A program made the translations under genes and the position numbers. Under the pieces are notes generated by a model. It saw only the letters and a program-made list of their open reading frames with translations, was not told the DNA's origin and searched no databases. Positions 15,453-64,000 of a DNA stretch of 64,000 nucleotides are shown one piece after another. The stretch lies in the IMG/VR virus record IMGVR_UViG_3300030294_000005, positions 124,001-188,000 of that record; one strand, 5' to 3'. Every line of letters starts with the position of its first letter. The first letter of the stretch is position 1.

Positions 15453-15719
15453 ATGGAAAAAAAGAAAAAAGTTATTAGTTTTATTGCAAAAAATAATGAG
15501 TACATTACTGTAGGTGAATTAAAACAGCACTTAGATGATTTCGACGATCTATTACCTATAACTGTATTTAATAAAGATGGAGAAATTGAATCATTAACTA
15601 ATGGTAATATATATAAATATAATCTAAATAAAGGATTAATAGATCCATCAGATCCTCAATATGATAATTATAAAGAATCAGATGGGTTTGATAAAACTTT
15701 ATTATTATATCCAATGTAA
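15453..15719 (+). CDS. hypothetical protein
   Basis: AAGGCGG RBS; N-terminal KKKKVISF. Confidence 0.7.
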   Translation: MEKKKKVISFIAKNNEYITVGELKQHLDDFDDLLPITVFNKDGEIESLTNGNIYKYNLNKGLIDPSDPQYDNYKESDGFDKTLLLYPM

Positions 15720-33465: not shown

Positions 33466-34653
33466 ATGAGAAAAGTAATAAGCTTTGTAAATGAAGAGAA
33501 TGAAATATATAATTTACATAAAGAAAAAAATATTAGTAGAGGTACATTAGTAGAAATTCACATTTCTGATATTCATTTTGGTAAACTAGATTCTAAATAT
33601 CAATATGATATACTAAATGAACAATTCTTAAATAAAATAAATGAAATACATTTTGATATATTATCAATAGATGGAGATATTTTTGAACATAAATTTATGT
33701 CTAACTCAGATGTTGTAATGTATGCATCATTATTCATAGATAGATGTGTAGATATATGCAGAACTAAATCTGCAACTTTTATAATAATTGCTGGAACTAA
33801 ATCTCATGATGATGATCAATTAAAATTATTTTATCACTATTTATCAAATTCTAATATTGATATTAGAATTGTAGAAGAGGTTAAGTTTGAATATATCAAA
33901 GGAGCAAAAATATTATGTATTCCAGAGTTATATGGAAAAGATGAAAATTATTATAATAAATTCTTATTCCAATCTGGATCATACGATTCTATATTCATGC
34001 ATGGTGAATTAAAAGGAGCTATATATGATAGAAAGAATAAAGGAGAATCTTATGTATTTGATATAAAAGATTTTGCTTTATGCAAAGGCCCTATATTAAG
34101 TGGACATGTTCATACAGGGGGTTGTTTTAATACTTATTTTTATTATGATGGATCTCCTTATCATATGCAGTTTGGAGATGATGATGAAAAAGGATTTTTA
34201 ATAGTATTGCATAATCTAGATACGAATATGCATTATACTCACTTAGAACCAATAACATCATTTAGATATGTTACTTTAAATTTAGACTCTATGCTTATAT
34301 CAGATCCAAAAGAAATAATAGAGTATGTAAATAAAGTAAAAGAAGATACTAATATTAAATATGTTAGATTAGAGTTTCTTAAAGAGTTATCAGATGCTGA
34401 AGTAGCTAATCTAGAACTTATTAAGAACTATTATAGAACTGATAATAATATAAAATTTAAAATAGAAAATTATAAGATTAAACAAATTCAAGAATCTAAT
34501 ATAGAAATATTAGATAAATATAAAGAGTATCAATATATATTAGATAAAAATATGTCTGAATACGAAATTCTTAGTAGATATATAAATCAACAAAAAGGCT
34601 TTACTTATATAACCACTGAAGAACTTATATCAATATTAAAGGAGGAAATATAA
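33466..34653 (+). CDS. sbcD: SbcD/Mre11-like metallophosphoesterase nuclease
   Basis: ISDIHFG, IDGDIFE, AGTKSHD, FMHG, SGHVH, YDGS motifs. Confidence 0.8.
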   Translation: MRKVISFVNEENEIYNLHKEKNISRGTLVEIHISDIHFGKLDSKYQYDILNEQFLNKINEIHFDILSIDGDIFEHKFMSNSDVVMYASLFIDRCVDICRTKSATFIIIAGTKSHDDDQLKLFYHYLSNSNIDIRIVEEVKFEYIKGAKILCIPELYGKDENYYNKFLFQSGSYDSIFMHGELKGAIYDRKNKGESYVFDIKDFALCKGPILSGHVHTGGCFNTYFYYDGSPYHMQFGDDDEKGFLIVLHNLDTNMHYTHLEPITSFRYVTLNLDSMLISDPKEIIEYVNKVKEDTNIKYVRLEFLKELSDAEVANLELIKNYYRTDNNIKFKIENYKIKQIQESNIEILDKYKEYQYILDKNMSEYEILSRYINQQKGFTYITTEELISILKEEI

Positions 34654-36412: not shown

Positions 36413-36439
36413 ATAATAATTATGAGAGGTGATCATAAT

Positions 36440-38221
36440 ATGAATTTAGAAAGACGGCAGAAGTACGCTGGTAGTAGGACTGTGACTAATTCTGATACAC
36501 AAATAGATATAAATTTTAGTATAGATACCTTATCTGTATTTTGTTCATATGTATTATCAGAAAATAAGAATATAAGGAAGTCTCATTTAATTAATCTAAG
36601 AAATTTATTTGATATCATAAATGTAGACTTATATAAAAATGATATAGAAAAAATGAAAAGATTAAACTTTATTAAAAAAGGATTAGAAGGTAAACTTCTT
36701 AAGAATCTAAATAATCCTGCATTGATTGTAAAATATATTAATGGTGGTATAATAGATGACGATGTTATAGATGTATATGGATTTGCATACATATCTAATC
36801 AGGAATTAGACTGGATAAATCAAACAGTATCAGAAGCTTTAGCGTGTGCATTTATATATAATGATATAGATAGAATGATGGATATATGTACAAGATTTAA
36901 AGCAGCAGACTATACATCTAAGTCTGCAATTGTAAAAGAATATGAGAATTTAGTAATAGAATCTCAAACAAAATTTAGAAGAGTAAAAGTTGAAACTCAA
37001 TCAGAGATGACTTTCACATTAAGAAAAGGATTAATGGAAGAAGTAGTTTCAGATATTCATGAACAACTTCTTAATCCTAGTAGAAGATTAATAACTGGAA
37101 TGCAAGGTATTAATGAAATGCTAGGTGGTGGATTTGAAAGTGGTAGAGTGTATATGCTATTAGGAATGACTGGTGGTGGTAAATCATTATCATTACTTAA
37201 TATAGCATATCAACTTAAGAAATATAATAAAAACTATAAAGCTAAAGATCCAACTAAGATACCAGTAATAGTATTCTTAACAATGGAGAATACTGTTAAA
37301 GAAACAGTTCAAAGACTATTTAATCTAGTAGTAAATGATGATATGGAGAACTATTCTGTAGAAGATGCTATAAATCTATTAAGAACTGATGGTGAGTTAT
37401 ACTTAACAGATGAATCACCAATAGATATATTAATAAAATATGTTCCAAATAGATCAGTTGACACAGGATATCTATATACAATGACTGAGGACTTAGAAGA
37501 TGAAGGTTATGAAGTAATAGCACTTATTCAAGATCATATTAAACGAATAAGATCTTGTTATCCTCAAACAGATTTACGAATAGAATTGGGAGCAGTAGTT
37601 AATGAATTAAAAATATTCTCAGTTATTAAAGATATTCCAGTTATAAGTAATTCACATTTAAATAGAGATGGAGCAAAGACCATAGATGAAGGTGCCCGTC
37701 AAAATAAAGCAGATTTAACAAGAATGTTAGGACGAGCTAATATAGGTGAATCAATGCTAATGTTAGATAATTTGGATTGTGCATTTATTATAAATATGGA
37801 GTATGATGCTGAAGGAAATAAGTATATGGTATTTAAACGAATAAAGTTGAGATACAAGGCAACTAATAGAGACTATATTTGTCAACCATTCGTTAAGGGT
37901 AATGATATTAAATTTATAGAAGATTATTATTCAGCAGTTCCATTATTTAGAGATAGTTTGAAAGCATTACCTAATGAAGTATCTTTATATAATACAGGAT
38001 TGCCTAATTCCAGAATGAATACCTATAATAGTATAAAAGATATAGATAGTGTTCTGAAAAATAATAATAATATAGATGATAATATTTTCAGTGCAACTAG
38101 GTACAAGCAGTCACCTATTGTTGATAATAATGGAGTAATAGATATGGTAACAATGCCAATAGCTATTGCAGGAAGACCATCTTCTCCTATTAGGAGACAA
38201 GCTATAAGATTTGTAAGTTAA
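36440..38221 (+). CDS. dnaB: DnaB-like replicative helicase
   Basis: LITGMQGINEMLGGG, Walker A GMTGGGKS, FLTME, IQDHI, ISNSHLNR; start moved to ATG 36440. Confidence 0.85.
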   Translation: MNLERRQKYAGSRTVTNSDTQIDINFSIDTLSVFCSYVLSENKNIRKSHLINLRNLFDIINVDLYKNDIEKMKRLNFIKKGLEGKLLKNLNNPALIVKYINGGIIDDDVIDVYGFAYISNQELDWINQTVSEALACAFIYNDIDRMMDICTRFKAADYTSKSAIVKEYENLVIESQTKFRRVKVETQSEMTFTLRKGLMEEVVSDIHEQLLNPSRRLITGMQGINEMLGGGFESGRVYMLLGMTGGGKSLSLLNIAYQLKKYNKNYKAKDPTKIPVIVFLTMENTVKETVQRLFNLVVNDDMENYSVEDAINLLRTDGELYLTDESPIDILIKYVPNRSVDTGYLYTMTEDLEDEGYEVIALIQDHIKRIRSCYPQTDLRIELGAVVNELKIFSVIKDIPVISNSHLNRDGAKTIDEGARQNKADLTRMLGRANIGESMLMLDNLDCAFIINMEYDAEGNKYMVFKRIKLRYKATNRDYICQPFVKGNDIKFIEDYYSAVPLFRDSLKALPNEVSLYNTGLPNSRMNTYNSIKDIDSVLKNNNNIDDNIFSATRYKQSPIVDNNGVIDMVTMPIAIAGRPSSPIRRQAIRFVS

Positions 38222-38675: not shown

Positions 38676-39047
38676 CTATCTTGGTGGTTCTATTATAATA
38701 GGACTATTAATTATACGTTGTAATATAGAACATTTATTTATATTACCACCTACAAATATTACAATATATTTATCACCTTTTAAACCTTTATAATTTCCTC
38801 CTGCTGCATTAAAAGGAACAAACAATTCTATATAATTACATGTAGTATAATTATTAGCATTGATTAAATCTTTATTTACTAAATTTGTTTTTAAAGTTAC
38901 ATGTGTTTCTAATACTATACTATTATTATTTAAAAATGTAAATATTGTTGGTATAGTAAATTTTACTATTGTATTAAATTCATAATCTTCCAATGCTATA
39001 GCAATTTCGGAATATTTGAAATCTGACTCTTCTATATAATTATTCAT
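38676..39047 (-). CDS. putative baseplate/tail protein
   Basis: Operon with the gp53-like gene; OB-like GDKYIVIFVGGN. Confidence 0.45.
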   Translation of the reverse strand: MNNYIEESDFKYSEIAIALEDYEFNTIVKFTIPTIFTFLNNNSIVLETHVTLKTNLVNKDLINANNYTTCNYIELFVPFNAAGGNYKGLKGDKYIVIFVGGNINKCSILQRIINSPIIIEPPR

Positions 39048-41212: not shown

Positions 41213-41255
41213 ATTATAGTATTTTATCATAATAAGTATGAAAGGAATTGATATT

Positions 41256-41666
41256 ATGTCAAAAGAGGTAATAAAGATTTTAGGGCCAAATGAAAGAAGT
41301 GAAAAAATAGAAAAGCTACTTTCTGAAAAACTAATTGTAGGAGAACCAGAAAGTGATAGTAGAATTAAAGGTTCGGAAGATAGAAAATATTTATTATTAT
41401 ACTATTTTTCAGATGAGAAAGGAGAAGAAGATCAAAAATCTTTTGAATTTATAATTGGTAGAATGGCTACCTATAAATTTATAAAAAGTATAATAGAAGA
41501 CATAAATATTCATAAATCAAAAGTTCTAGTTGAAACTGTAACGCTAAACGAATTAATCAGTGTTTATGAATTCATGAAACATATATCTTCAATAATAGAA
41601 GATGATGATAAGGATTCATTTGATATAGAAGATTATAATACTGGAGATTATGACGACGAGGTTTAG
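41256..41666 (+). CDS. hypothetical acidic protein
   Basis: AAGGAA RBS before ATG 41256. Confidence 0.75.
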   Translation: MSKEVIKILGPNERSEKIEKLLSEKLIVGEPESDSRIKGSEDRKYLLLYYFSDEKGEEDQKSFEFIIGRMATYKFIKSIIEDINIHKSKVLVETVTLNELISVYEFMKHISSIIEDDDKDSFDIEDYNTGDYDDEV

Positions 41667-42551: not shown

Positions 42552-43373
42552 ATGTTTAATCAACAACCATTCGGACAAGGTAATTTTGGTGGATATCCGC
42601 AGGGAGGTATGCAGTATGCACAAATGCCTGTAGCAAAAATGACACAGGTATTAACTCCTGAACAAATGAAACAATTAAGAACAACTAGTAGCCAGTTTAG
42701 TTTGCAGGTTGATCCAATTGAGATCACCAGATCACTATGCACACATAAAGATAATGGTAAGATTGCTTTAATAGATAATCAAGATGGCAGTGTTACATGT
42801 ACAATATGCGGTGCAAAGTTTAAACTAGTTGATTGGGAAGTTGTACAGGTACAAGAAGTAACAAATATGTTTATAGATGTACTTCAATCAATTAAGACTT
42901 ATTATCTTGATATTCCAGAAAGTTATGTAACAGAATACTTCAAGATGATTCCACTACTAGAGAAAGTTCCAAAGTTCTTTGAATTAGCTTACCATAACTT
43001 TAAGAAATATGAGCAGGGAAATCAGTTCCAACAAAATAACGGAATGTATGGTTTCAATATGCTTAGTGCAATAGCTGGGCCAGGAATGATGAACCCAGGA
43101 TTTAATCAAGGACAGCAAGGATTTGGTCAAGGCGGACAACAAGGATTTGTTCAAGGTGGACCAGTAGGTGCTCCAATGTATCAACCAGCAGGTGGATATG
43201 GTAGTCCATTTGTAAGTCAAGGATACCCAGGACAATATCCACAGGGCCAAGAATATCAACAACCATGCCAACCACAGCAACAACAACCAGTACAACAGCA
43301 ACAACCAGCACAGTCAGTACCAACAGGTCAACAAGGACCAACAGTACAGACTACAAAAATGTTTAATTTATAA
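42552..43373 (+). CDS. zinc-finger protein with G/Q/P/F-rich low-complexity tails
   Basis: CTH...CTICG metal site; GFNQGQQGFGQGGQQGFVQGG repeats; poly-Q/P C-terminus; AGGAGG RBS. Confidence 0.8.
   Translation: MFNQQPFGQGNFGGYPQGGMQYAQMPVAKMTQVLTPEQMKQLRTTSSQFSLQVDPIEITRSLCTHKDNGKIALIDNQDGSVTCTICGAKFKLVDWEVVQVQEVTNMFIDVLQSIKTYYLDIPESYVTEYFKMIPLLEKVPKFFELAYHNFKKYEQGNQFQQNNGMYGFNMLSAIAGPGMMNPGFNQGQQGFGQGGQQGFVQGGPVGAPMYQPAGGYGSPFVSQGYPGQYPQGQEYQQPCQPQQQQPVQQQQPAQSVPTGQQGPTVQTTKMFNL
43098..43160 (+). repeat. imperfect coding tandem repeat GGATTT(N)3CAAGG...
   Basis: Three GF.QG units in DNA and protein. Confidence 0.7.
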
Positions 43374-43472: not shown

Positions 43473-44303
43473 ATGATTAGAATAAATGGTGATTGGGAAT
43501 TAGTCGAATCTGATACTGGTCAAAGAAAATATGGTAATATAATTTCTAAATATAAATGTAAAAAATGTAATGATACTAAGTTAATGCCTAAGTATTATAC
43601 TAATAAAAATGTGATATGTGAAACCTGTACTAAAATATTTCTTGATTCTATTATAAATAAACAATTTGGAAATTGGATTATAATAGAATATTCTCATAGA
43701 GATAGATATAGTAGACGTTTTTATAAATGTAGATGTGTATTATGTGATACTATTCATACAGTAGAACTGTCTAATATATTAAATGAAACTACAAAATCAT
43801 GCGGTTGTCTGACTAAATATTATCAATCATATAGTAATTTTAAACATGGATTATATAAACATCCATTATATTTTATATACCATTCTATGTTGCAAAGATG
43901 TCAGAATAAAAATAATGATAATTTTATACGATATGGTCAACGAGGTATATATGTATGTGATGAATGGTTGGGAGAAGATGGATTAATAAATTTTTATAAT
44001 TGGTCAATAAATAATAAATATATACATGGATTATCTATACATAGAATAGATAATGATGGCCCATATGCACCATGGAATTGTAAATGGGTAACTAGAGAAG
44101 TTCAACAAAATAATACAAGAGGAAATCATTATGTACAGTTGAATAATACTATGTATACAATAGCAGATATTTCTAGAATGAGTAATATCCCTTATAGCAA
44201 AATAAGTTATGCTATATTAAATGGAAAATCTGTACATGAGGTTTTACAAAAACTTAACAAAAAAATAAGTATTATTAGTTTTGCAAAGAAGGAGGAACAA
44301 TAA
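43473..44303 (+). mobile_element. free-standing HNH-type homing-endonuclease-like gene
   Basis: CRCVLC...TKSCGC, HPLY..YHSMLQRC, RYGQRGIYVCDEW, LSIHRIDNDGPYAPWNCKW..REVQQNN; TAATG-coupled to gyrB. Confidence 0.75.
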
Positions 44304-60670: not shown

Positions 60671-62854
60671 ATGGCAGATCCAAGTTTAATTAATAACGTT
60701 TTAGAAGCAGGAAAAAGATTAACATCAAAAGAACAAATGTTAGGTAAAGGATTGAATATGCCTTTTAACGCTCTAAATTCAGGAGCAAGAAAAATAATGT
60801 TTTCTACACAGATGGATCATCGTGTAGATTTGTTTAACCCAGAAGCCCCATTAATAAGCACGGGGTATGAAAATAGATTTGGTGAATATACATCTTCTTT
60901 TATCAAATCTGATAGTAGATATATGGTAATTGCTAAGATAGAAAAATTCTCTCATCTTCCAGGGCATCATTATTATTTAGTGTTAAAGAAGTTTGATAGT
61001 GATGAATATGAAATTATTGAGAGAGTAATGTATGAGCATGTTACTGAAGCTTACGGATATCTATATAATACAAAATATATGGATCATCTAAAGATTGGAA
61101 GTATAGTAGAAACTAATGATGTTATACGAAAAAGCACATCATATGATGAATATGATAATAGAATGGATGGGGTTAATTTAATAACAACATATCTATCTAA
61201 TGAAGATACAAAAGAAGATGGAATTGTAGTAGCAAGGTCTGTAACTGAAAAGTTAGCATGTCCATTAATTAAGACTATCCAAATAATAATCAATGATAAT
61301 GATATACCACTTAATATGTATGGCGATGATAATATATATAAAATAATGCCAGATATAGGAGAGAGCATAAAGAAGGGTATATTGTGTGCTATGAGAAGAG
61401 AGAAAAAAGAAGAATCATTATTTAATCAATCTCTTCAACATCTTCAATCATTAATGATGTCAGATGATAAGTTTATAGCAAAAGGACAAATTATAGATAT
61501 AGATGTATACTGTAATAATCCTGAGATATTAAAAGAATCATACTATGCTACACAAATAAAATATTATAGTGATAATAGTTTTAGATTTATGAATGATATT
61601 GTAAATGTTATTAAACCTATAATAGAAGATAATGTTAATAAGTGTAGTTATGAATTACAGAAAATATATTATGATTGTAAGAAGATAGTAGTAGATGGGA
61701 AGAAGTATATAAAAGATAAACCATTCTCTAATACTATAATAAATATAACTATATTAGAGAAGAGTGTATTAGCAGTAGGAGATAAGATATCTAATAGATA
61801 TGGTGGTAAAGGAGTAGTTTCTAAGATAAGAGAAGATGATCTAATGCCATTATTAAAAGATACAGGTGAGAGGGTTGAAGTAATATTTAATTCAGCAACA
61901 TGTATAAATAGAGAAAATATAGGTCAATTATTTGAGACATCGCTAAACGATATATCTAATAAATTACTTCATTATATGGAGAATGTATTAGATACAGATG
62001 AATGTAATGAGATGTATAGAGATTTGGTTTATTTAACTAATAGGGAACAAGGCGAGAAGGTAGATGAATTATTATCTAGATTATCTCCTGAAGAACAGCA
62101 TTATTTCTTTGACTCTGTAATATCAGATAGTGGCATAATGCTTAGTATGAAACCTATAAGTGATCCAATGAATATTGATATGCTGTCTGCAATATATGAT
62201 AAATTTCCTTATATAAAACAGCATAAGGTAACAGTGCCACAAAGGGATTCTAATGGTAATGTAAGATATCTAGAAACTAGAAGAAGATTGACTTGTGGAA
62301 AACAATATATCTATAGATTAAAACAATATGCTGAAGAAAAGTTTAGTGCGACTTCACTTTCTTCAACAAATATAAGAAATGAAAATAGTAGAAGCTCTGC
62401 TAAAAAATCTTATAAAACAATATTTACAAAAACTCCAATAAGATTTGGAGAAATGGAATCTGGAAACTTATTACATCTTGGTGCAGAAAATGTAGTTATT
62501 AACTTATTACTATATTCCGCATCTCCTAAAGGAAGAAGACTTGCTGAAGAATTATTAATTGGTAATCCGTTTGATATAAATGTTAAATTGGACGACCAAT
62601 CTACAAATAGAGGTGTTGAAATTCTTAATGCATATTTATTAACAATGGGATTAAGAATAGAATTTGTAAAAACACAAAAAACTAAAAAAGCACCTATTAA
62701 GTTTACACCTATTATAGTTCCAGCAAATAGAACTCCAATACGATTTGTTAATCCAGATGATAAGATGATTAAAGAGTATCTAGATAATTTTGGTAAGAAA
62801 TCAAAATCACCTATTAAATTTGTTCCAATATCATTTGTAGGAAGGACTGATTAA
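60671..62854 (+). CDS. rpoB: split RNA polymerase beta C-terminal subunit (probably non-virion RNAP)
   Basis: NSGARKIMFSTQMDH, EDGIVV, GDKISNRYGGKGVVS, NRENIGQLFE, GKQYIYRLKQ, RFGEME. Confidence 0.92.
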   Translation: MADPSLINNVLEAGKRLTSKEQMLGKGLNMPFNALNSGARKIMFSTQMDHRVDLFNPEAPLISTGYENRFGEYTSSFIKSDSRYMVIAKIEKFSHLPGHHYYLVLKKFDSDEYEIIERVMYEHVTEAYGYLYNTKYMDHLKIGSIVETNDVIRKSTSYDEYDNRMDGVNLITTYLSNEDTKEDGIVVARSVTEKLACPLIKTIQIIINDNDIPLNMYGDDNIYKIMPDIGESIKKGILCAMRREKKEESLFNQSLQHLQSLMMSDDKFIAKGQIIDIDVYCNNPEILKESYYATQIKYYSDNSFRFMNDIVNVIKPIIEDNVNKCSYELQKIYYDCKKIVVDGKKYIKDKPFSNTIINITILEKSVLAVGDKISNRYGGKGVVSKIREDDLMPLLKDTGERVEVIFNSATCINRENIGQLFETSLNDISNKLLHYMENVLDTDECNEMYRDLVYLTNREQGEKVDELLSRLSPEEQHYFFDSVISDSGIMLSMKPISDPMNIDMLSAIYDKFPYIKQHKVTVPQRDSNGNVRYLETRRRLTCGKQYIYRLKQYAEEKFSATSLSSTNIRNENSRSSAKKSYKTIFTKTPIRFGEMESGNLLHLGAENVVINLLLYSASPKGRRLAEELLIGNPFDINVKLDDQSTNRGVEILNAYLLTMGLRIEFVKTQKTKKAPIKFTPIIVPANRTPIRFVNPDDKMIKEYLDNFGKKSKSPIKFVPISFVGRTD

Positions 62855-62855
62855 A

Positions 62856-64000
62856 ATGAATGACATAATAAGGAAAGTTTTAGATGAAGTAAGACAAGGG
62901 AATAAAACTTTTCTTACTGATTTAGAAACTATGAGTAAGATAAACTCATATGTAGAAATGGTAATAAAATCAAATACACATTCCAATGATGATATAGAAA
63001 ATATGAAAGGTATGTTAGAGATTTCTAACATACTTTTTAATAACACAGATAGAGATTTTATATTATTAGAGGATGGGGTATATGATTTATTAATTGAAAA
63101 ATGTAAAAAATATGATCCAAATTATTTAGTAGGAGCAAAACCTGTTTATTTTGCTCCTACAAATAATGACTCATTGACTAAACTAAAATCAAAAGTTATA
63201 AGATTTGTTGATCAAGATAAGATAGATGATATGTTATATGGAAATGATATATTCAAATATGAAGAAATAAAAAGAACTGATATATTGAAGAGTCCAATAA
63301 CATTTAAGAATACTGATGTGATAGCTAAGAGAGTAGTAAATACAAAACATAACTATCCAAAATTAGTAGGGACTTTAGATAAGGGTAAATTTGTATTAAG
63401 TTCTCAAGCAAAAGAAAAAGGTGTATATGATGATAATAATGTAAAAATATTAGAAAGGGATTTCTTTAAGAAACATATAGATGATGGAATCTTAGATCCA
63501 AATAGAAAGTTCTATATAGTTGCAGAATTAAAATATGATGGAATTTCTGTTGAAGGAGATGTTACAAATCAGATAGAAGGAGGAAGAACTAGAGGAGATA
63601 CAAATGAAGATATTGCAGCTGACCTAACTCCTATATTAAGAGGTTATAGATTTAGATATGCTCCAATGATAGATGAAGCTTTTGGGATGAAATTTGAAGC
63701 TATAATGACTCATAATAATTTAGCAAAATATAATGTAATCAAACAGAAAGATTATAAGAATTGTAGAACTGCTATCTCTGGATTATTTGCATCGTCTGAT
63801 GCTCCACAGTTTAGAGACTTTATAACATTAGTACCTTTAGCAACTTCTATAGAAGACATTGATAGACTTTCTGAAATAGAATTTATGAATAAGTATTACA
63901 ATTCTGGAGAAAGATTAAGATATTCAGTATTGTATGGTAACTATGTAGATATACTATTTCAGATAAAGAAATTTGTAGAAGAGGCAGAATATCTTAGACC
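62856..64000 (+). CDS. ligA: NAD-dependent DNA ligase, N-terminal part (truncated by window end; not in ORF track)
   Basis: Open frame from ATG 62856: LEDGVYDLL (SDxEYD equivalent), HNYPKLVGTLDK, adenylation ELKYDG, TRGD..EDIAADLT. Confidence 0.8.
   Translation, partial: MNDIIRKVLDEVRQGNKTFLTDLETMSKINSYVEMVIKSNTHSNDDIENMKGMLEISNILFNNTDRDFILLEDGVYDLLIEKCKKYDPNYLVGAKPVYFAPTNNDSLTKLKSKVIRFVDQDKIDDMLYGNDIFKYEEIKRTDILKSPITFKNTDVIAKRVVNTKHNYPKLVGTLDKGKFVLSSQAKEKGVYDDNNVKILERDFFKKHIDDGILDPNRKFYIVAELKYDGISVEGDVTNQIEGGRTRGDTNEDIAADLTPILRGYRFRYAPMIDEAFGMKFEAIMTHNNLAKYNVIKQKDYKNCRTAISGLFASSDAPQFRDFITLVPLATSIEDIDRLSEIEFMNKYYNSGERLRYSVLYGNYVDILFQIKKFVEEAEYLR

Follow-up and report, generated by a model that had tools for sequence, protein, structure and literature searches.

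We analyzed a stretch of 64,000 nucleotides (the window; positions 124001-188000) of the virus record IMGVR_UViG_3300030294_000005, a single contig of 236,184 bp with a GC content of 26% and an estimated completeness of about 95%; coordinates are those of the window unless marked "genome," in which case they count from the start of the record. The end of the window holds two consecutive plus-strand genes whose products carry a recurring short hydrophobic sequence, here called the tag. The first (60671..62854) encodes the C-terminal half of the beta subunit (beta-C) of a non-virion RNA polymerase (nvRNAP), the orthologue of AR9 gp088, as judged from tblastn (33% identity to AR9 over amino acids [aa] 1-673), the Pfam domain RNA_pol_Rpb2_6, and synteny. 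The second (62856..64000, continuing past the window end to genome 189144) encodes a NAD-dependent DNA ligase, the orthologue of AR9 gp094, with the Pfam domains DNA_ligase_aden, DNA_ligase_OB, and HHH_5, and it follows the beta-C gene as it does in AR9. Peat metagenomes contain near-identical DNA for positions 60671-63998, with no fewer than 13 independent runs giving matches.

The phage (G000; 285 open reading frames [ORFs] called across the whole genome) was compared with thirteen related IMG/VR genomes, whole or large (G001 to G013). An IMG/VR scan returned relatives at 47 loci with 37 to 76% identity, and a profile scan with the polymerase gene at least 434 IMG/VR stretches; the GC content of the clade genomes ranges from 26 to 36%. 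The nearest cultured relatives are Bacillus phages AR9 and PBS1, with 33% identity across the RNA polymerase gene, and the jumbo phages of Staphylococcus, Listeria, and Yersinia are more remote. This clade of AR9-like jumbo phages is large, uncultured, and widespread in the environment. A tag-less sister lineage was sought in IMG/VR, and none was present among the best 80 matches, all of which belonged to the tagged clade.

The beta-C protein ends in a tail of about 60 aa (62672..62851, plus strand) that extends beyond the homology to AR9, PALS_2, and phiR1-37; the polymerases of these three phages have no such tail and end in a short acidic stretch without repeats. The tail carries four tag copies, APIKF (62690), TPIRF (62732), SPIKF (62807), and VPISF (62822), laid out as two pairs with a short helix-like spacer between them. 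A further look-alike inside the polymerase, TPIRFGEME (aa 589), was rejected, since it is a conserved core motif of RNA polymerase. All 57 distinct beta-C tails of the IMG/VR relatives contained an internally repeated short pattern, in two to five copies and with the same layout of pair, helix-like spacer, and pair, and at least 20 different patterns, hereafter called codes, were distinguished among them.

The ligase carries its tags in an insertion (63153..63350, plus strand) that alignment with AR9 and the 13 relatives places between VGA and HNYPKLVGTLDK. This insertion, 65 to 70 aa long between VGA and the element H..P.LVGTLDK, occurs in 14 of 14 clade genomes with two tag copies (KVIRF at 63192 and SPITF at 63291 in G000) and is missing from AR9. 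An earlier note, made from the sequence of the window, had described the insertion as holding three motif copies, all of them, like the copies elsewhere, outside the catalytic cores. All the copies it listed were found where it had placed them, and its description was borne out for the tails and extensions, for the insertion itself, and for the two copies named above. The third ligase copy, KPVYF (63138), had to be given up: it is a conserved element of the LigA core (VGA.P[IV].[FY]-like in 14 of 14 clade ligases), and of this site AR9 keeps only VGANPPK.

We then determined which other proteins of the phage carry the tag, identifying them by Pfam and AR9 homology. Four of the five nvRNAP subunits were tagged: in addition to beta-C, these were beta-N and beta'-C, each on a C-terminal extension, and the fifth subunit (AR9 gp225-like), which begins with MKIIKFV. 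The fifth subunit (genome 23681-25757) consists of two ORFs of 311 and 172 aa, which are fused in G003 and G004. The tag was also present on the exonuclease part of the PolB DNA polymerase (C-terminal extension) and on its catalytic part (internal loop ahead of the conserved DYDFY), on a ResIII/DEAD superfamily 2 (SF2) helicase (two copies on a C-terminal extension), close to the C-terminus of RNase H, on a Dam methyltransferase ending in NVIKFV, at the N- or C-terminus of five homing endonuclease-like genes, at the N-terminus of an AT-hook/coiled-coil protein, and at the termini of several small uncharacterized proteins. The PolB catalytic gene, a single gene in the relatives, is split in G000 (genome 230030-233425), where its pieces flank a gene for an HNH endonuclease (230707-231501).

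Within the window, the carriers include a divergent DnaB-like helicase (36422..38221, plus strand; Pfam divDNAB and DnaB_C), whose homology to AR9 reaches aa 513 and which continues into an 86-aa C-terminal extension ending in SPIRRQAIRFVS, with AIRF at 38201, and an SbcD-like nuclease (33466..34653, plus strand), in which a 32-aa N-terminal extension starting with MRKVISFV precedes the homology to AR9 gp002 from aa 33 on. An 88-aa ORF (15453..15719, plus strand) starting with MEKKKKVISFI had no Pfam match, and no orthologue of it was found in the relatives. The gene at 43473..44303 (plus strand), which ends in SIISFAKKEEQ (44268) and was labeled HNH-like, that is, homing endonuclease-like, in the earlier note, gave no Pfam domain; it is one of three paralogues in G000, all three with a terminal tag. 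A small acidic protein (41238..41666, plus strand; family 165238) carries a variant near its N-terminus, MSKEVIKIL, and its orthologues in most genomes have copies of their own code near the N-terminus. The AT-hook carrier (genome 199275-200210, minus strand) is clade specific and occurs in 14 of 14 genomes. Its N-terminal tag is followed by a linker that is disordered and, in part of the genomes, rich in Q, Y, and P; then come the AT-hook KKRGRPRKK, a long hairpin of helices, and, at the C-terminal end, a conserved beta domain of small size. A Foldseek comparison of its AlphaFold model with the PDB gave no structural match.

Wherever a carrier has an orthologue in AR9, the homology to it ends before the tag-bearing extension; these extensions are additions specific to the clade. 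The tag thus sits on N- or C-terminal extensions or surface loops and recurs in unrelated proteins above chance, which is the generic mark of a short linear motif; in the one tag region that was modeled, that of the AT-hook carrier, disorder was predicted by AlphaFold.

Across the clade, protein families divided into regular carriers and non-carriers. No tag hits at all were found across the 14 genomes in SbcC, UvsX, primase, Dda, one topoisomerase II (TopoII) subunit, a protein resembling single-stranded DNA-binding protein (SSB), and the tape measure protein, nor in the virion RNA polymerase beta'-C and the virion protein families. The other TopoII subunit, the terminase, a GroEL-like protein, and the other virion RNA polymerase subunits had no terminal and one or two interior hits. 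The tagged proteins act on phage DNA inside the cell.

The form and frequency of the tag in G000 were determined over the whole genome. When the N-terminal 15 and C-terminal 45 residues of each protein were considered, the pattern [VPAI]-I-[SRKT]-F had 28 matches, about 7-fold more than the 4.3 ± 2.0 (maximum, 8) expected from shuffling the N-terminal zone, the interior, and the C-terminal zone separately; narrower zones held 10 matches (N-terminal 12 aa) and 13 matches (C-terminal 20 aa). Permuting the four positions of the motif yielded 23 control patterns, which gave zero to two matches per terminus; the two exceptions, I[SRKT]F[VPAI] and I[VPAI][SRKT]F, both overlap the genuine motif. The looser pattern P[IV].F occurred 28 times, versus 12.8 ± 3.5 in within-protein shuffles. 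A logo of 30 instances from G000 showed K at position -3, K or S at -1, then V, P, or I, followed by I, by S, R, or K, by F, and by V, I, or L, with an N/D/E-rich stretch thereafter. The copies differ in their codons, so the signal is one of the protein level, and a DNA-level motif is ruled out. The comparison with shuffled background that the earlier note had proposed therefore came out clearly in its favor, in the permutation and the zone-shuffle tests alike.

In the thirteen relatives, tags were found at the matching positions of the matching orthologues, with a sequence peculiar to each genome. The codes include NPFIH, MCKIV, MVTF, PIYF, GMxY, AFSY, FMxR, IWxK, and others. The C-terminus of DnaB, for instance, reads RQAIRFVS in G000, EIINPFIHVA in G001, QPMVTFKRDVA in G003, LIRGMIYE in G006, NRAFSYIA in G007, KKFMTRVPA in G010, and IDPPFKIRV in G013, and the N-terminus of SbcD runs through the series MRKVISFV, MNFGMNPFIHID, MIPMVKF, MIPGMVYE, and MRKIWRKL. 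When six codes were searched against the termini of six proteomes, each code hit its own proteome 28, 17, 9, 13, 19, and 6 times, respectively, and the others zero to three times. The code of the resident genome stood at the same terminus or loop in nvRNAP beta-C (13 of 14 genomes), DnaB (12 of 14), the PolB exonuclease part (11 of 13), a gp241-like protein (10 of 11), the SF2 helicase, nvRNAP beta'-C, the fifth nvRNAP subunit, and the PolB catalytic part (10 of 13 each), and the ligase (10 of 14). Homing endonucleases, although mobile, also bear the local code, as in TMCHIIN and NMCRIV at C-termini in G002 and NPFEH in G001.

Since hand-written regular expressions carry a risk of circularity, we also used a pattern-free test, in which the best 5-mer identity between the RNA polymerase tail and the termini of other families was compared between own and other genomes. 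Covariation with the tail was significant in seven of eight carrier families (P = 0.0002 to 0.03), the eighth being beta-N (P = 0.078), while eight control families gave P values of 0.38 to 0.99. For the polymerase tail and the ligase, the covariation was also seen in 13 additional nonredundant loci (P = 0.0024). Within each genome, 10 or more protein families switch sequence in concert.

In a tree built from the polymerase core, code classes were confounded with phylogeny, and covariation was therefore given up as a route to the receptor. The tree grouped G000 (VISF), G003 (MVTF), G010 (FMxR), and G012 (IWxK) in one supported clade and the carriers of GMxY (G006) and AFSY (G007) as sisters; codes therefore switch between close lineages. 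The beta-C tail of G012 contains both KIW-type and ILTF-type copies and may represent a transitional state. The conservation in orthologous tails that the earlier note had proposed to check was therefore found for the position and the copy architecture, and not for the sequence, which is rewritten in concert. Such concerted switching is stronger evidence for docking than plain sequence conservation, since genome-specific rewriting on a dozen unrelated proteins is what is expected of ligands for one co-evolving pocket.

That the tag is a shared, co-evolving docking code is well supported by these results. We consider it probable that it acts as a short linear docking motif on flexible segments, read by one partner that gathers the enzymes on phage DNA. 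What the data show are the terminal enrichment, the carrier set, the conserved positions, and the concerted switching; that the tag binds, that it has only one receptor, and that the enzymes are thereby brought to DNA is what we infer. In the proposed mechanism, the tag would be a linear motif on flexible extensions and loops that the clade has added to its enzymes, and all copies within a genome would bind the same pocket of one partner, most likely encoded by the phage, which would collect the tagged enzymes on replicating phage DNA, with the several copies on the RNA polymerase giving avidity. Pocket and ligands would have changed sequence repeatedly, leaving each lineage with a private code. 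The multivalent docking motif for one hub suggested in the earlier note accordingly finds support, at the level of sequence, in the enrichment and the concerted switching within genomes.

As for the kind of partner, the carrier set (DNA polymerase, ligase, RNase H, helicases, an Mre11-like nuclease, methyltransferase, and RNA polymerase) looks like the clients of a sliding clamp such as PCNA. In T4, the split between the tagged proteins and the untagged UvsX, Dda, and primase is mirrored by that between the clients of gp45 and those of gp32, the SSB. A clamp-like list of clients together with an SSB-like list of untagged proteins favors a DNA-bound platform that would link replication, repair, and late transcription. 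Clamp-binding motifs (QL[SD]LF of bacteria, the PCNA-interacting peptide [PIP] box of archaea and eukaryotes, and the gp45-binding tails of T4 gp43, gp33, and gp55) are likewise short, hydrophobic, and located at termini or in loops, they share with the tag the clients polymerase, ligase, RNase H, helicases, nucleases, and methyltransferase, and the T4 clamp platform also couples replication to late transcription. The tag is unlike them in that it changes between sister lineages, whereas clamp motifs are frozen across kingdoms, and in that several copies sit on core subunits of the RNA polymerase itself, with no clamp or clamp loader detected. No code in the 14 whole genomes or the other RNA polymerase tails fits QL[SD]LF or QLxLxL, and the spacing of the PIP box, Qxx[ILM]xx[FY][FY], was seen in none of them.

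Several observations weigh against a DNA-bound hub of this kind. TopoII, UvsX, Dda, primase, and the SSB-like protein act on phage DNA and yet are untagged. A motif that serves more than 13 clients of one hub would be expected to stay frozen, and its repeated wholesale switches call for a special driver. Searches for the partner came back empty: a six-frame search of the genome for a DnaN-type clamp (TIGR00663) gave no matches at an E value of ≤10, the gp45-like clamp family PF09116 had no match in the phage genome, although a structurally divergent clamp could escape such a search, no gene resembling a clamp loader was seen in the genome, about 25 clade-specific proteins gave no informative Pfam or PHROG match, and no receptor was found by the clamp, chimallin, PicA, Pfam, and PHROG searches. 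Among 20 clade-specific proteins compared with PHROGs, none was named a clamp, and over about 35 carrier and candidate proteins Pfam and PHROGs gave enzyme names for some carriers and nothing for the receptor candidates. In the AlphaFold model of the AT-hook carrier, moreover, its own tag was not docked in cis. Complex prediction of three candidates (the 190426 family, the AT-hook protein 75-311, and the SSB-like protein 10-220) with the RNA polymerase tail 683-727 returned 0.00, a value that counts neither for nor against binding.

Receptor candidates were shortlisted by three traits: conservation throughout the clade, no counterpart in AR9 in a profile search, and lack of the tag. The shortlist contains the SSB candidate, an HTH-like protein, a Q/G/P/Y-rich protein, a GNAT/NTPase protein, a protein with an SH3/Tudor-like barrel, and several others. 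The SSB-like protein (genome 19138-19911, plus strand), probably the SSB of the phage, contains linkers rich in N, G, and S and ends in an acidic tip that is conserved; as a lead only, its ESM Atlas model resembles single-stranded DNA binders of the Whirly/PC4 fold (TM score, 0.45 to 0.61). With the SSB C-terminal tip (acidic...IPF), the tag shares the principle that one peptide-pocket contact organizes many genome maintenance enzymes, but the polarity is reversed: the hub bears the peptide in SSB, and the clients bear it here. The HTH-like protein (genome 190426-191100, plus strand) has about 210 aa and an acidic tail and is always encoded directly upstream of nvRNAP beta-N, a slot that is occupied in AR9 by a uracil-DNA glycosylase inhibitor; a protein language model (ESM Atlas) hinted at an HTH_3 domain, which we take as a lead only, and the protein may be an nvRNAP-associated factor.

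The Q/G/P/Y-rich protein (42552..43373, plus strand; 273 aa), a candidate receptor or scaffold, has prion-like or FG-like low-complexity ends that flank, in the alignment, a conserved domain of about 130 aa with an invariant C..H...C..C. It occurs in 12 of 14 genomes, has no AR9 homologue, gave only a subthreshold zinc ribbon hint in Pfam, and could serve either as a scaffold that forms condensates or as a linker protein of the SSB kind. The protein of family 61536 (genome 61536-62462, plus strand; 308 aa, universal and clade specific) was modeled by AlphaFold with a pLDDT of 88; its N-terminal SH3/Tudor/KOW-like barrel resembles, at modest Z scores, the RNA polymerase-binding Tudor domains of UvrD/PcrA and CarD, but unrelated matches commonly reach the Z scores of 7.5 to 7.8 seen here, and we take the resemblance as no more than a lead. 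Its remaining 250 aa had no structural match, and an ESM Atlas look-up of the protein also returned nothing. The GNAT/NTPase protein (genome 53510-57097, plus strand; 1,195 aa, clade specific) combines an N-terminal GNAT domain and a P-loop (AAA_16/AAA_22-like) NTPase with about 900 unmatched aa. A conserved module of three genes (genome 120710-123278, plus strand) was negative in Pfam; its first protein looks kinase-like by eye, with a zinc ribbon and a coiled-coil extension that brings it to 445 to 813 aa in relatives, and the two neighboring small alpha/beta proteins look paralogous. The GroEL-like protein was rejected as a receptor, since the region equivalent to the apical domain is conserved, not hypervariable, and the protein is shared with the tag-less AR9.

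Among the other explanations, a possibility to which we give less credence than to the docking hub is that the tag is a genome-private, evolvable address code that gives proteins, including selfish homing endonucleases, access to a factory of replication and late transcription. Its rapid diversification would then stem from its working as a lock and key between co-infecting relatives, satellites, or host decoys, a kind of kin discrimination that more than 13 proteins would carry at once. Close to it, and in our view unlikely, lies a plain compartment address, in which the tag, as a linear signal in the manner of an NLS, would license entry into or retention in a replication compartment or condensate; a shell, scaffold, or importer, and not a DNA-bound platform, would then act as the receptor. 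The tagged endonucleases and Dam suit access or address as well as they suit a platform, which makes the address of a compartment or condensate the strongest competitor of the docking hub: selfish homing endonucleases and Dam, which need only access to phage DNA, bear the resident code, virion and metabolic proteins have no tag, and clade-specific low-complexity proteins (the Q/G/P/Y-rich protein and the AT-hook protein) are at hand. Encapsulin cargo-loading peptides, encapsulation peptides of microcompartments, and the Rubisco-binding motif of the pyrenoid are similar in that a terminal or linker peptide of related cargo, often in several copies, meets one receptor surface; they differ from the tag in that its cargo is the DNA and RNA enzymes of a phage, its diversity within one clade is far greater, and no shell or scaffold was identified.

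With the nuclear import of chimalliviruses (PicA/Imp1), the tag system shares a jumbo phage setting, split multisubunit RNA polymerases, and a selective handling of DNA-acting proteins, and chimallivirus import determinants likewise vary between species (PMC12908238). Targeting there, however, is by surface patches of folded proteins and explicitly without a terminal signal (PMC12908238), while the element shared here is a terminal or loop linear peptide and no folded patch. A compartment address is further disfavored by the fact that TopoII, UvsX, Dda, primase, SbcC, and the SSB-like protein are untagged although they would need to enter, and, weakly, by an empty search, limited to sequence, in which phiKZ gp54 and gp69, used for chimallin and PicA, gave no match in the genome at an E value of ≤10.

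A docking site for an enzyme or a quality control factor that acts on all the carriers, such as a kinase, phosphatase, acetyltransferase, protease (the tag being a degron), or chaperonin, appears improbable. The phage does have a GroEL-like protein and the universal, clade-specific, untagged GNAT and P-loop NTPase protein, together with the second such protein that is kinase-like by eye and has a zinc ribbon (Pfam negative), and the G000 code, K-x-I-[SRK]-F, conforms to the regular expression for RVxF, the docking motif of eukaryotic PP1; like that motif, the tag lies in a disordered region and would be bound in the form of a beta-strand. Of the more than 20 codes, however, just this one conforms to RVxF, and the codes contain no consistent Ser, Thr, or Tyr; three to five copies per tail and conserved paired loop copies, as in the ligase and PolB, are atypical of degrons and kinase docking, and against a chaperonin stand the features for which the GroEL-like protein was rejected above.

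A host partner (the clamp, SSB, or RNA polymerase of the host), with codes that vary because hosts vary, would account for the fact that no phage receptor was found and is compatible with hosts that may differ among genomes of 26 to 36% GC, and we rate it as a shade more improbable still. The close kin G000, G003, G010, and G012 differ strongly in code, bacterial hub pockets such as that of the beta clamp are highly conserved, and the cultured relatives growing on Bacillus, Staphylococcus, and Yersinia have no tags. It seems very improbable that there is no separate receptor and that the tags pair homotypically as beta-strands, gluing the carriers into one assembly: all carriers of a genome do share a single sequence in multivalent copies, and concerted change would come automatically, but many codes begin with Pro and are flanked by charges, and several are cationic (FMxR and IWxK) and would make poor self-pairing strands. 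An artefact of composition or ORF calling in an AT-rich genome (26% GC, rich in I, K, N, and F) with K/I/F-rich termini is refuted by the permutation, zone-shuffle, and covariation tests, as permuted and reversed motifs and zone-preserving shuffles stayed at background, bar the two overlapping permutations, the codes of relatives use G, M, C, W, H, and P, and covariation was significant in carrier families only.

One further observation was made amid the block of replication genes. A small protein encoded at 38679-39047 (minus strand) ends in a motif of the type KGDKF[IV]VTF[IV]GGD[IV]NKP.I.GR, which by eye is reminiscent of the N-domain, an OB-fold, in spike proteins of the baseplate (gpV/gp5-like).

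Docking to a hub by a short motif is well known. What is remarkable is that the code is private to each genome and rewritten in concert: at least 20 versions exist in one jumbo phage clade with at least 434 members in IMG/VR, and each of them has been rewritten on at least a dozen proteins. As a rule, few sequences in biology are as frozen as shared docking motifs, and we know of no other regime in which a hub and its clients evolve through private codes rewritten in concert; a literature search found no paper describing such a genome-private code. For this clade, the tag offers a simple sequence rule by which uncharacterized phage proteins may be assigned to the machinery of replication and late transcription, and it would link the non-virion RNA polymerase directly to the replisome. 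The resident codes on the homing endonucleases suggest that such elements must acquire the local code to function, and a swap of five residues between phages should re-address a protein.

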